This document shows positions 21,135 through 25,567 of a DNA stretch of 64,000 nucleotides, piece by piece; position 1 is the first letter of the stretch, and every line of letters starts with the position of its first letter. The notes beneath the pieces were generated by a model. The model did no database searches. It was given only the letters and a program-made list of their open reading frames with translations, and was not told the DNA's origin. The stretch is from Ylistrum balloti (Eukaryota), in contig NW_026782226.1 in assembly GCF_031769215.1 (NCBI RefSeq), forward strand, positions 248,001 to 312,000. Reading direction: 5' to 3'. The position numbers and the translations under genes were made by a program.

Positions 21135-23276
21135 CTACTTGGCACATGACTTTGAGTTATGGTCTGCACCATGACAGTTTGAACATTTCCTACTTTCTTT
21201 TGTTCTTTTCCCTTTTCCCTCGAGAAATAAGAGCCGATTTTGTTTCTCTAATACTTGCTTCAATGCAGGTAATCCTCTATGACATGATCCCCTAAAAAAC
21301 TGCTTTGTTATATTATCATTGAGTTTTTCTAGTCCTTGTTGGCTAAATCTTACCATGGTTCCATGAGTTCTAATGATCTCTCCCACATGATATCTCAACA
21401 AGTGTATGTATGGGGTAATATCTCTTGTTTGATACACCTGTATATAAAGAGCACACCAGCTTTTTGCCTTCGCTTCAATCTCATCAGGGTCTGGATTTTC
21501 AGATTTTATTAACTCATTTATGTCTTTAAAGCCATCCCATAATTCCTGAATCTCTGCTGCTCTGTCCTTATCCTCAAACAAATCTGATGCATGAAAATGG
21601 TCAAACAAAACACGCTTCTCTGGACCTGTAAGGTCTCTGTAGTCCAATTTCTTTGTTTCTTGATTTACACCTATCTCAAAATGTATTCCAAGTTGCTGTA
21701 GCACATTTTCTAATTTCAAAACATGCTTCAGTTTGTCTTTCTTCTCGTACACACTTGTAAATGTGGAGTTCTCATTTATGTTATCTAAGCATCTTAAGTC
21801 AGAAAGGAGAAGATTGAACAATTTGTCAGATATTCTCAAATACATATGCAAATGGTCTATAACAACACGATTTGGAGTAATGCTTGGAAAAAGTGGCTTA
21901 TTCTTCACAGAAAAAAAACCCTTGTTGACCTTCTTTCTCTTTAGTGATGAAGATTGTACCAATTCCTCACACTTATACTCAAGTCTAGCTCCTTTGGATG
22001 GATCAACCATAGACCAATTTCTACTGAGGTCTAGTTTTTCAGCCTTGTTACATGTGCAGTAAATGCAAAAATGCTGACAAGCTACTGAAGATATTCCAGT
22101 AGCAAGCAGAAGAAATTTATAATCCCCGCCTAAAACTATTTCAATATCAAAACTTCTATGTTGTACTTTTAGACTATTGCCATCTAGTTCCTCAACTTCC
22201 TTAACCAAATCTGATAAACCCAATACTAGATCACTATATTTTTCTGCAGTTCGTATGACAGCCAAAGGGTAGTTTCCCCGGACTGATGCACTCCTTTCTT
22301 CATTTACAATAGTAAAAGTAACATTAACAACATGAATCCTTTTCCCTATATTTGTACCATCCCCTGATATTTTAATTTTTACCTTACCTGCAGGGGCAAA
22401 GTTCTTGTCAGTTTTAATCTTATGTGAAAGTACGTCATGTAAATGTTTTTTCAAACTCTGCTGAACACCAAGTCCATCTGGAGTTTGGATGATATCAAAT
22501 TTTGAATTTAAATCTGAAAGAACTTTATTAACAGCGTTAATTCTTGGGAGGGTTTTAAATGCCATACTCAACTCATGATATGCATCTTTACTGATGTTAA
22601 ATGTATCTAAAATGTAAATCAGAGCATTCAAATCATCTAAAGTTTCACTTGCCTCCAGTGACTGGTTTTCCTTATTTTCACCAGTTTCATACAATCTAAG
22701 CACCTCCTCTTTTCCATTCCTGACCACTGTGACAGATACAGGCACAGCATCTGAATCTTTTAAAAATGACAGTGCTTTTTTACAATGTTCTTCATCTTTT
22801 TTCCTAATTTTGGACTGCCAACTAGGTGTGCAATCAGCAAATGCTTTCCGCTTTATAGGTTTCACTTCAGGAGTACCAATTACTGCACTTAAATTACATA
22901 ACTTTTCCCTCAACTCTTTGTTTTCTTTTTCTTTATCCCTTAGATCTTTTTCAGTATCAGCCTTTATTTTATCAACTAAAAACTGAGTTTCTTCTCTATC
23001 AACTTTGACGTCCCAACTATATTTGGAATGTTTTAATTGTTCTTTAAACTTTCTAAATTGTGACCCACCCTTCACTTTTGCTTGTAAACCATTTTGTTTA
23101 AGCCTAAAAAGTTCAGCACGTAAACATTTCAAACTATGTTCATCTGGGAGAAATTTCAATGTACAGATGCTTTCAATAGCTGTTGATATTTCTTTAACAG
23201 TTGGTATATTTAATGGTTTATTCCAATAGTTTTTCAATAGTATATTAAAAAGTTCTTCTCTAGAAATGATGATCAT
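21135..23276 (-). CDS. Intact RAG1/Transib-superfamily DDE transposase, 713 aa, single exon
   Basis: Motifs in RAG1-core order: basic NBD-like KRKAFADCTPSWQSKIRKK; DDBD-like ILDTFNISKDAYHEL..LPRINAVNK; D306 (ISGDGT); D385 (LGGDYKFL) followed by C404-x2-C407; NKPLF..VIDHLH; TPYIH625LLRYH630; FSQQGLE650KLN; C-terminal C698-x2-C-x4-H-x4-C711. These parallel the RAG1 motifs SCDG / GYDEK..CTLC / SIDALH / NYFHKTLAH / SEGNESGNK, recalled from knowledge rather than from a search. Confidence 0.88.
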   Translation of the reverse strand: MIIISREELFNILLKNYWNKPLNIPTVKEISTAIESICTLKFLPDEHSLKCLRAELFRLKQNGLQAKVKGGSQFRKFKEQLKHSKYSWDVKVDREETQFLVDKIKADTEKDLRDKEKENKELREKLCNLSAVIGTPEVKPIKRKAFADCTPSWQSKIRKKDEEHCKKALSFLKDSDAVPVSVTVVRNGKEEVLRLYETGENKENQSLEASETLDDLNALIYILDTFNISKDAYHELSMAFKTLPRINAVNKVLSDLNSKFDIIQTPDGLGVQQSLKKHLHDVLSHKIKTDKNFAPAGKVKIKISGDGTNIGKRIHVVNVTFTIVNEERSASVRGNYPLAVIRTAEKYSDLVLGLSDLVKEVEELDGNSLKVQHRSFDIEIVLGGDYKFLLLATGISSVACQHFCIYCTCNKAEKLDLSRNWSMVDPSKGARLEYKCEELVQSSSLKRKKVNKGFFSVKNKPLFPSITPNRVVIDHLHMYLRISDKLFNLLLSDLRCLDNINENSTFTSVYEKKDKLKHVLKLENVLQQLGIHFEIGVNQETKKLDYRDLTGPEKRVLFDHFHASDLFEDKDRAAEIQELWDGFKDINELIKSENPDPDEIEAKAKSWCALYIQVYQTRDITPYIHLLRYHVGEIIRTHGTMVRFSQQGLEKLNDNITKQFFRGSCHRGLPALKQVLEKQNRLLFLEGKGKRTKESRKCSNCHGADHNSKSCAK

Positions 23277-23298
23277 TTTTTAAATGTTAACTTTGGCA

Positions 23299-25567
23299 TT
23301 ACAAGAGAGGGTCATCCATCAAATTTGGTAACATTCTGTAGTTGCCAGTGCACTTCACAAAACTGACTATGACTTGTTTGCCCCTTGGCCGAAATGATTC
23401 TTCAATCCTGAGCTGACCACCAGTCTTTCGGACAACAAATTCTTTGGATTCTCTTAGAGATTTATGATAAATCTTAACTGTTGCTGTTTTAATATAAACA
23501 CAATCTCCTTCCTTATTAAGTATCCTAAAATCCCAATGTTTCCCAAAAATAGAGTTCAAGTCGAAGCGTGACCTTAAGCTGTACACAGTTTTTGTTTCTG
23601 TTTTTTTAAACATGTGTAGCTTTTCTTGAAGACAAGAAAAATCCCTTTCATCCATAGGAGTTTTTAGCCTTACAATGCTGTCCAGTCTTGAACCTGTTGT
23701 CAGACTGTCCTTGATCATTGAACCCACATTCACAATTGACTGTGTCCCCTCACATTCATTAGTCTCAAGTTCTGCCTCTTTGATGATAGTGTCATACTTT
23801 GCACTCCATCCTATCAATAAAGATTTTACATCATAAATAAACTATGACAAATTTCAATGATGCATTTTATCAAATACACCTGTTGATCTAGTGTGCAAAA
23901 ACCATTTACCGGTACATTGAATTATTAGCTTGAAGTGACTTCAAACAATTTCTTTCCCCCTCCTCTCCCCAATATCCGTTCAATTTCTGGCAGGGAGTTA
24001 AATGAGAAGGTACATTTGTAACATTTTGTTCGAAAAATGTTTTGTATTTCATTTCATTACATGTAATATGATCCCATAGTGTTATTTTGTCAAGGGAGGT
24101 ATTACTCCAGGTAGTTTTTAAAATTAATGTTTTCAAACAAAAATGTATTACTATGATTGAACCATTGATACCTGATAATTTTTTTAAGATGAAGAAGAAG
24201 AAGAAAAAGCAGACGAAACTATCATAAGAGTAACAGAGATTATTAATTTTCTTAATGCGTCACTAGGAGTCGAACTCATGACCTCTCACCAGGGACGTAT
24301 ATAACAGAGTATACGTATTATATGTCCCTGCTCTCGCTAACTAGTGTTACACTTTACCGAATGAGATAACAAGATCTCCCTAGCTGAGTTGGTAGGAAAC
24401 AGCTAGTATTTACAAGGCTGACATAAGATTTTCTTTAGAGGAATTGAAAGATTACATTTGATTATACAGATTTTTCTATATACAATGATATAATATTAAT
24501 CATGTATCGAAAGTGTTAATGATCACATATTTATGCATATATATAAGGAGACTTGAGTTTAAAAAAATCCTGAAGATTCTTAATTAATGGTATAACATTG
24601 GTAATTTGTTTTTAAGTTATAGAACATAACTGTGTTACTGTTCAACAGCCTGTGTTAAATGTTACACACCTAATGATGAAAGTTTATGCATGCATATATT
24701 ATATGTATACAGTTAAAAATAAATAATAAAAAAGTCAACAAAATGCTGAAAGCAATAATTATCAATAGTATTTACTACATACAACATACCTGTAAAATGA
24801 ACTTTGACATAACCATCTTCTGGACTGGACAGGATTTCCACCGGATACAATCCTGCTTTCCACTCTTTTGATTTCAAACTGCTCTTTCTTGCCTTTGGCA
24901 ATTCAACAAAGTTCAAATCTCTGCAAAAAATATTGATTTTACAATATACAAATGAAATTTTACATTTACGCTTTAGATGTACTTGGAACCTGTGGGTGGA
25001 AGAGTGTGAATGCATTAGAAAACTATTTTTAGCTTGAGATGTATAAGCATATATACATGTACAGTATACAGTAAATACCTTACTATTTTCAATCTACATG
25101 TACATTTGGCCTATATTTCATGCTACAGTACTAGTACAGTACAGTACTAGTTCAGAACCCCCCCCCCTCCCATTAGTTTCACACACACAAAATGCTTTCT
25201 ATTTTGCACATAAACACCTAAATCACAATACTTATTGAATAACCCATATGTTATATCACAGCACATGCATTGAAATGGACTTAATTTGATTTAACCCAAA
25301 TACATTTTTTCCCGAACGAAGGAGTTCCCGCGGCTCAACTTGCACTAAGATAGTTGGTATATTTTACCGGTAACACCGGTGCAATGCAGCACTGTCTGCC
25401 TTTCGATTGTCTATTGGTACATTATGTCATTCCATTCAATCACAACCATTATTAAATACTCGTTTTTACACTTATTAGACTACTTACGAGTAAGAACTCA
25501 CCGAGATCCCGTCTTTACCTTTGATTTCGGGCTTCCTTTTTGAACAGCAAGTCAAAACCGACGCCAT
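23299..25567 (-). CDS. Spliced gene of about 240 aa with an N-terminal Tudor-knot/chromo-barrel-like domain and an unassigned C-terminal domain, directly upstream of the transposase
   Basis: Exons 25567-25488, 24920-24790 and 23810-23299 (723 nt, phases 2 and 1 compatible, donors gtaagt and gtatgt). The exon 2/3 splice creates LYPVEILSSPEDGYVKVHFTG|WSAKYDTII, matching the VH(Y/F)xGWxx(R/K)YD signature of Tudor-knot domains. Exon 1 is less certain (alternative donors; possible extra exon ending ATG at about 25791). Confidence 0.72.
24257..24366 (-). pseudogene. Degenerate tRNA-like / SINE-head fragment interrupted by a 41-bp MITE
   Basis: The minus strand reads ctcattcggtaaagtg (A-box-like) ... 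ctagtta ... gagttcgactcc (B-box) once the 24290-24330 insert is removed; the stems pair poorly. Confidence 0.45.
24290..24330. mobile_element. 41-bp minimal inverted-repeat element with a probable 7-bp TSD
   Basis: cagggacgtata ... tatatgtccctg (11/12 inverted match); flanks ctctcac / ctctcgc differ only by a CpG-type change. Confidence 0.65.

Follow-up and report, generated by a model that had tools for sequence, protein, structure and literature searches.

The window analysed here is a stretch of 64,000 nucleotides from the scallop Ylistrum balloti (part of contig JAUZWB010000550.1). It contains on its minus strand two closely spaced genes, an upstream gene termed ORF1 (ORF for open reading frame), which begins at 25567 and ends at 23299, and an intronless transposase gene of 713 codons at 21135..23276. 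An earlier reading made from the letters alone (the sequence-only reading) had placed both genes at these positions, and all of these coordinates hold. The ORF1 stop codon, a TAA at 23301-23299, is separated from the transposase ATG by a spacer of 22 nt (23277..23298, minus strand), and an in-frame TAA is located two codons before this ATG (TAA AAA ATG), as had also been read. Both genes lie inside a transposon of 5,451 bp (20188..25638, minus strand).

The boundaries of this transposon are defined by its copies. Four copies in Ylistrum balloti (L001, L002, L003 and L004, of which L003 is the copy in the window) are 99.3-99.8% identical over the region corresponding to 20188-25638, and the sequences beyond this region are unrelated among them. 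The copies are located at unrelated loci and share sharp boundaries. The 713-aa transposase ORF is complete in all four, and both ORFs are intact in young copies. RefSeq contains at least eight ORF1 loci in this species, and a relative of 6,256 bp is present in Mizuhopecten yessoensis as two copies that are 100% identical. The element is a multi-copy, young DNA transposon that carries two genes.

The inverted ends of the element are imperfect and 23 bp long. The 5' terminal inverted repeat (TIR; 25616..25638, minus strand) begins with CATATCAAGATT and is unique in the window. Compared with the reverse complement of the other end, 17 of 23 positions agree, including all of the first eight (CATATCAA). 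The 3' TIR (20188..20212) begins with CATATCAATATA when read on the plus strand and is found at the same relative position in all four copies, the homology between the copies stopping at 20188. The ends of the Ylistrum element read CATATCA...TGATATG, and the TIRs of the Mizuhopecten relative, which agree at 25 of 26 positions, also begin with CATATCA. The element is young and probably still active, because near-identical intact copies with TIRs are present at unrelated loci.

The sequence-only reading had proposed a comparison of copies to define the ends and the target-site duplication. This comparison gives the inverted ends, but no 5-bp direct repeat is found to flank the four complete copies L003, L004, L006 and L007. 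The right end is followed by G in all six copies compared, and the left end is preceded by C in four of the six. The ends may be CATATCA...TGATATG with no duplication of the target, or the true ends may be located 5 nt further in (CAA/CAG), in such a way that ATAT represents a 4-bp duplication in a palindromic CATATG target. In L001 (at 9377) and L002 (at 9382), the first 4-8 nt of the 5' end are altered, AATT or GATATGGC replacing CATATCAA; these copies are otherwise >99% identical to the other copies despite their altered left ends. One contig assembled from run X1, the only sequencing run found over the stretch, covers part of the left flank. This contig (record 6; 2,472 nt, depth 9 versus ~30 inside the element) aligns to 25639-25963 with ~2.1 kb unaligned, and the alignment halts exactly at the element boundary, 25639. 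It may represent the empty allele, in which case the insertion would be polymorphic and the contig would show the target site.

The two proteins and their linkage

The transposase matches nothing in Pfam or PDB when searched as a single sequence. About 15 homologues were found by word search, in scallops at 44-52% identity and in other assemblies at 33-40% identity, and a profile of 15 sequences was compared with PDB. This profile matches RAG1 core chains at E 2e-7 and BbRAG1L at 0.013, and HzTransib is not reached at E up to 10. It aligns the GGD motif with the D708 region of RAG1, CxxC with C727/C730, Hx4H with H937/H942 and GLE with E962. The AlphaFold model of the transposase has a predicted local distance difference test (pLDDT) score of 83.7, and in a Foldseek search it matches mouse RAG1 at 9e-14, BbRAG1L at 9e-11 and HzTransib at 2.5e-9, with the P element transposase far behind. 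The identity to RAG1, BbRAG1L and HzTransib is only about 14%.

By profile and model, the transposase has a RAG1 fold with a DDE triad and ZnC2/ZnH2 ligands. The triad consists of D306 (22359-22361), D385 (22122-22124) and E650 (21327-21329), and the zinc ligands are C404/C407 in CIYC (residues 404-407; 22067-22056) and H625/H630 in HLLRYH (residues 625-630; 21404-21387). An LH motif is present in DHLH (residues 474-477; 21857-21840). All of these codons are on the minus strand, as is a C-terminal zinc knuckle, Cx2Cx4Hx4C (21144..21185), which in the family alignment equals the CTT* motif of RAG1L, defined as Cx2Cx3GHx4C (PMC7204232). Seven relatives (P0002, P0007, P0009-P0013) have the exact CTT* form, and D replaces G in the window copy and in P0005. 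At the other end of the protein, the first 200 residues contain five Cys and three His and are helical in the model; neither an N-terminal zinc-finger (NZD)/RING region nor a Chapa zinc finger is found there by sequence or model.

ORF1 consists of three exons, derived from a reading of the minus strand, and encodes a protein of 240 aa. In protein searches, ORF1 matches Ylistrum balloti proteins at 100% identity. Exon 1 (25488..25567) begins with the ATG at 25567, 71 nt inside the element end, and ends at a phase-2 donor (GTAAGT following TC), which is conserved in Mizuhopecten and Argopecten. Exon 2 (24790..24920) encodes at 24790-24853 the first half of a Royal-family domain (GLYPVEIL...VKVHFT), which is split by the following intron and completed at 23782-23810 (GWSAKYD) in exon 3 (23299..23810). 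The rest of exon 3 encodes a beta-rich C-terminal domain and ends with the TAA. RefSeq models P0029 and P0031, which represent other genomic copies, have the same exon structure; model P0016, for the window copy, instead begins at an ATG within intron 1 and encodes 245 aa.

The sequence-only reading had described ORF1 as Tudor-knot-like. Pfam matches of the ORF1 family are weak, all below threshold (MSL3_chromo-like in six of eight members, best 7e-4; Tudor-knot 0.011), but the family profile matches MBT, chromo-barrel and Tudor chains in PDB at 1.3e-7 to 1e-3, and the description is borne out. The matches include the MBT repeats of L3MBTL3 (1.3e-7), ARID4A (6.6e-5), Arabidopsis MRG2 (4e-4), L3MBTL1 (7e-4) and MRG15 (1.4e-3), as well as Eaf3, PHF20, MSL3 and MOF. 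The string VHF/Y-x-G-W-x3-Y-D crosses the junction of exons 2 and 3, with G44, W45, Y49 and D50 invariant, and its spacing equals that of the cage residues F379, W382 and Y386 of L3MBTL1. Thus, as judged from the profile matches, ORF1 holds a Royal-family (MBT/chromo-barrel/Tudor-knot-like) domain of the methyl-lysine-reader type.

Beyond this domain, ORF1 continues for ~150 residues as the conserved beta-rich C-terminal domain. Solved folds are not clearly matched by this domain, the best hits being E 0.03 in Foldseek against PDB and Z 4.7 in a wide VIA-align search, and a shape search of the Atlas gives template modelling (TM) scores of <=0.45 on either normalisation. In AlphaFold-DB, the domain matches an uncharacterised coral protein (E 1.2e-6, TM 0.70) and uncharacterised proteins of amphioxus, scallop, oyster and several Rhizophagus species. 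By fold, residues 69-200 (the 23299-23700 region) also resemble the C-terminus of a protein annotated in an insect as 'C2orf42 homolog' (Foldseek E 4.6e-3, probability 1.00). The domain may therefore occur in a conserved animal gene whose function is unknown. An exhaustive search with the ORF1 profile gives 781 cluster representatives at E <=0.001, mostly of 200-250 aa and spanning both domains. Fold relatives of ORF1 and of the transposase share one unusual set of taxa, namely cnidarians, molluscs, amphioxus and Glomeromycota. A RAG2-like gene, which the sequence-only reading had reported to be missing, is likewise not found here, since neither Pfam nor fold searches of the element reveal a kelch or PHD gene and none is present among the called neighbours.

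Intron 2 of ORF1 contains a short high-copy repeat (24143..24339) that lies outside the coding system. Its assembler depth in run X1 is 141, locally up to 694, versus ~30 elsewhere in the element, and small indels around it distinguish the four Ylistrum copies. ARAGORN detects no tRNA in this repeat, which is probably a SINE (short interspersed element)-like insertion.

Adjacency of the two genes in other genomes, which had been proposed as a check, is found at 14 of the 15 loci examined, from scallops to a sponge-related assembly. The gene order is tandem at L001-L009, L014 and L016, and convergent in four distant relatives, L010-L013. At every scallop locus, covering the four Ylistrum copies, a 51%-identical Ylistrum paralogue, two loci of Mizuhopecten and three of Argopecten, ORF1 immediately precedes the transposase and has the same orientation. 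The distant locus L010, which was found with the transposase, has a convergent ORF1 alongside. When searches are seeded with distant relatives of ORF1, a transposase of the family adjoins in five of six cases, three convergent (L011, L012 and L013) and two tandem (L014 and L016), the exception being L015 of Pecten maximus; the ORF1 cluster of L011 includes the sponge Dysidea avara. The linkage holds in both gene orders and where the transposases are only about 30% identical.

The tight tandem coupling claimed by the sequence-only reading is real insofar as the two genes form a conserved unit in one mobile element, but the 22-nt spacer is particular to the subfamily of the window. The spacers measured in L002 and L005-L009 are 22, 242, 147, 837 (local duplication) and 103 nt, those of the relatives thus being 103-837 nt. 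The spacer of 837 nt, in L008 of Argopecten irradians, is this long because tandem repeats of the ORF1 end are located between ORF1 and the transposase, the last ~80 ORF1 codons being repeated twice more at 9246-9500 and 9586-9840.

The protein identity matrices of ORF1 and the transposase correlate across eight elements (Mantel r 0.88, p about 6e-4), with ORF1 evolving faster than the transposase. This correlation of the sequences indicates that the two proteins co-diverge. Together, the comparative data strongly support a partnership of ORF1 and the transposase.

Two of the distant loci also provide information on element ends. A 77-nt inverted repeat with 91% complementarity (8735-8870 and 14364-14440) encloses the convergent pair of L013; its left arm belongs to a perfect 50-nt palindrome, and its termini are ill-defined and unlike CATATCA. 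The L014 element ends 52 nt past the transposase.

Affiliation of the transposase

The AlphaFold-DB clusters nearest to the transposase come from Nematostella, corals, Mytilus, rotifers and Rhizophagus and consist of uncharacterised proteins (E 1e-27 to 1e-17), and RAG1 ranks 18 among the cluster matches (1.4e-15). In a feature search of the ESM-Atlas, DUF1280 clusters are at the top. DUF1280 has been equated with Chapaev transposases by Majorek et al. Matches of single members to Pfam are all weak (RAG1 0.001, DUF1280 0.014, DUF1258/Mirage 0.031), and DUF1280 is matched by only one of 15 members, far below its curated cut-off. The transposase is about equally distant from RAG1, Chapaev and Mirage. 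The term RAG1-type used in the sequence-only reading is correct for the fold, as indicated by the profile and Foldseek matches, but the element is not RAG-like in the strict sense, because its ends are not CAC, a 5-bp duplication is not seen, an N-terminal zinc-finger/RING region is not found and the identity is so low.

RAGL elements (ProtoRAG, invertebrate RAG1L-RAG2L) carry RAG1L and a convergent kelch/PHD RAG2L, and have CAC ends and 5-bp duplications. The scallop element resembles them in having two genes, a RAG1-fold DDE transposase with ZnC2/ZnH2 and a CTT*-type Cx2Cx3GHx4C motif, and a partner gene with a histone-reader-type domain; distant members of its family share even the convergent gene order. 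It differs from them in that the partner is a 240-aa Royal-domain protein instead of a kelch propeller with a PHD finger, and in its CATATCA ends, the absence of a visible 5-bp duplication and of NZD/RING, and the tandem order of the scallop members. Only Aureococcus anophagefferens is known to have a tandem partner upstream of its RAG1-like gene; the partner in AanRAGL is likewise transcribed in the same direction, but it is a RAG2L, and the element has CAC-type ends and a 5-bp duplication (PMC9435367). Transib shares the RAG1-core fold and catalytic residues, but is described as a single-gene element with CACAATG-like ends and usually 5-bp duplications, whereas two conserved genes and CATATCA ends are found here. 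Chromodomain-bearing elements such as chromoviruses (10.1101/2021.11.30.470311) also have a domain of the methyl-lysine-reader type that could direct integration, but in these elements the reader forms one fusion protein with the integrase or transposase, whereas here it is encoded by a separate conserved gene.

The element may instead be a plain member of Chapaev (CMC), called RAG-like only because RAG1 is the sole solved structure of the supergroup, with a second gene that is perhaps already recorded in Repbase or Dfam. The Chapaev hallmark motifs C(2)C, LH and H(4)H (PMC4079192) are all present in the transposase, the nearest ESM-Atlas clusters carry DUF1280, and the nearest AlphaFold-DB clusters include those of Nematostella and amphioxus, where Chapaev was first described. 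The target site can be read in the same direction: ends placed 5 nt inward would leave a 4-bp ATAT in CATATG, which fits the CMC range of 2-4 bp and resembles the palindromic targets of Chapaev3 with their ATWAT habit (PMC4079192). However, the N-terminal Chapa zinc-finger domain of Chapaev (PMC4411706; 10.64898/2026.01.24.700457) is not found in the first 200 residues, and the ends are CAT...ATG, as opposed to the CAC...GTG called 'invariable' for Chapaev, which has a 3-4 bp duplication. The single weak match to DUF1280 also argues against this assignment, since RAG1 and DUF1258 are matched at similarly weak values. In addition, the literature searched holds no second gene or Royal-domain partner for Chapaev or Transib, so that even if the name is right, the two-gene architecture is still undescribed in the searchable literature. 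We regard plain Chapaev membership as a possibility to be kept in mind, although not the one we favour. The favoured assignment is a separate or Chapaev-proximal branch of the CMC/Transib supergroup, outside RAGL and Transib proper, because the family combines ~14% identity to the known structures, DUF1280-type neighbours and Chapaev motifs, yet is without the Chapa finger and CAC ends.

Expression of the two genes

RefSeq groups the two proteins as isoforms. In three Mizuhopecten genes, the 704-aa transposase is 'isoform X1' and ORF1 products of 240 and 212 aa are 'isoforms X2/X3', and in Argopecten ORF1 and the transposase are likewise isoforms of one gene. This grouping suggests that their transcripts share exons. 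An AATAAA at 23217..23222 (minus strand), 77 nt past the ORF1 stop and inside the transposase ORF, is a candidate polyadenylation signal for a short ORF1 mRNA. Maize En/Spm (CACTA) produces its TnpD transposase and TnpA, which binds DNA of the subterminal repeats, from one alternatively spliced transcript, and it has CACTA ends with a 3-bp duplication. It belongs to the same supergroup, and its two proteins per transcription unit correspond to the arrangement that the RefSeq grouping suggests here, but TnpA is not a Royal-domain protein and the ends and duplication of En/Spm differ from those of the scallop element.

The sequence-only reading had proposed that the two genes are expressed as a spliced fusion or by re-initiation on a bicistronic mRNA, and had pointed to an acceptor following the transposase ATG. 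This acceptor, tttctag followed by A in codon 6, is present in the window copy, where a join to exon 1 (phase 2) would be in frame. The short spacer of this subfamily and the RefSeq placement of both products under one gene could be taken to favour the same proposal. However, L005, L006, L008 and L009, which represent four related subfamilies, either lack the acceptor or have it in another phase; the spacers of the relatives are 103-837 nt long; and fusion is impossible in the distant relatives, in which the genes are convergent. The reading frames of ORF1 and the transposase differ, stops lie between the two, and RefSeq products are either ORF1 or the transposase, never both. A spliced ORF1-transposase fusion was therefore rejected, and expression as one protein, or strictly from one bicistronic mRNA, is highly improbable. 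One 5' promoter with alternative processing is favoured, because the acceptor is not conserved and convergent relatives cannot fuse.

Interpretation

The element is best explained as a cut-and-paste DNA transposon that is autonomous, was active recently and codes for two proteins, an explanation to which we assign a probability of roughly 0.78. The transposase would excise and insert the element by DDE chemistry of the RAG1/Transib/CMC type, and would recognise the CATATCA ends, perhaps partly through its CTT*-like zinc knuckle. ORF1 would be a required or stimulating cofactor of the transposase. Its MBT/chromo-barrel-like domain, in which the aromatic positions of F/Y-x-G-W-x3-Y are kept, would bind a methylated histone lysine and thereby tether or gate the transposase on chromatin, and its second domain would contact the transposase or the element DNA. 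The RAG2 PHD finger tethers or gates RAG1 on chromatin, and chromodomains do so for Ty3/gypsy integrases, so that a role of this kind for ORF1 would have analogues. A single transcription unit, with its start in the 5' end of the element, would give rise to both proteins, and alternative splicing or polyadenylation would yield separate ORF1 and transposase mRNAs, as in En/Spm, without a fusion protein.

Several points weigh against this explanation. No transposase lies within 10 kb of an ORF1 homologue in Pecten maximus (L015), and the test of co-divergence rests on related sequences that provide few independent contrasts. The putative chromatin-reading cofactor role of ORF1 is deduced from sequence. 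The AlphaFold2 model of ORF1, which was built from eight sequences, is of only moderate confidence (pLDDT 73.5), and the predicted C-terminal domain matches no recognised fold. The isoform grouping of RefSeq is a pipeline call. Run X1 is genomic DNA, because its depth is flat across introns and flanks and it contains no splice joints. Finally, the expected 5-bp target-site duplication is not seen.

The Pecten maximus homologue (LOC117344989; L015:10001-20351) encodes 223 aa, has three RefSeq transcripts and, owing to long introns, extends over 10 kb; it may represent a partner gene that was domesticated or left orphaned. Also highly improbable is the view that ORF1 plays no part in transposition, being a passenger or a captured host gene, or that the pair is a domesticated host system, since this solo homologue, the large size of the ORF1 family and the resemblance of its C-terminal domain to part of C2orf42-type host proteins are outweighed by a linkage that persists over two gene orders and great divergence of the transposase, by the intactness of both ORFs in young copies, and by the presence of copies with TIRs at unrelated loci, which is the behaviour of a transposon and not of a single-copy host gene.

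The two-protein transposon so favoured appears to be undescribed, as the sequence-only reading had supposed: no paper in which a separate Royal-domain gene accompanies a transposase of the RAG1-fold, CMC or Transib kind was found in the full-text literature, a search that did not extend to Repbase Reports and Dfam. A much broader proposal is that RAG1-fold transposons include an old and widespread lineage, present in sponges through to molluscs and perhaps also in cnidarians, amphioxus and Glomeromycota, whose members work as a two-subunit machine composed of a nuclease and a separate methyl-lysine reader, the genes of which were originally convergent. This proposal is tentative, and we consider it rather unlikely to hold in full. 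If it is true, the design of RAG1-RAG2 is realised here with an unrelated reader, and chromatin-gated cutting of the RAG1 type arose at least twice or predates RAG2.

It is a central open question why RAG1 requires a partner that is able to read histone marks. To our knowledge, relatives of RAG1 show only two states, with RAG2L (RAGL) or without a partner (Transib). The scallop family represents a third state, in which an unrelated protein of the reader type accompanies the RAG1-fold transposase in faithful linkage. It also gives the CMC/Transib supergroup a further branch, which is distinct and unusual in its ends and target behaviour. The young intact copies would be suitable for cloning and direct tests. 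Should ORF1 act as a cofactor of the transposase, the combination of a RAG1-type nuclease with chromatin reading would be a recurrent solution, and the scallop element would provide a simple experimental system in which to study it.

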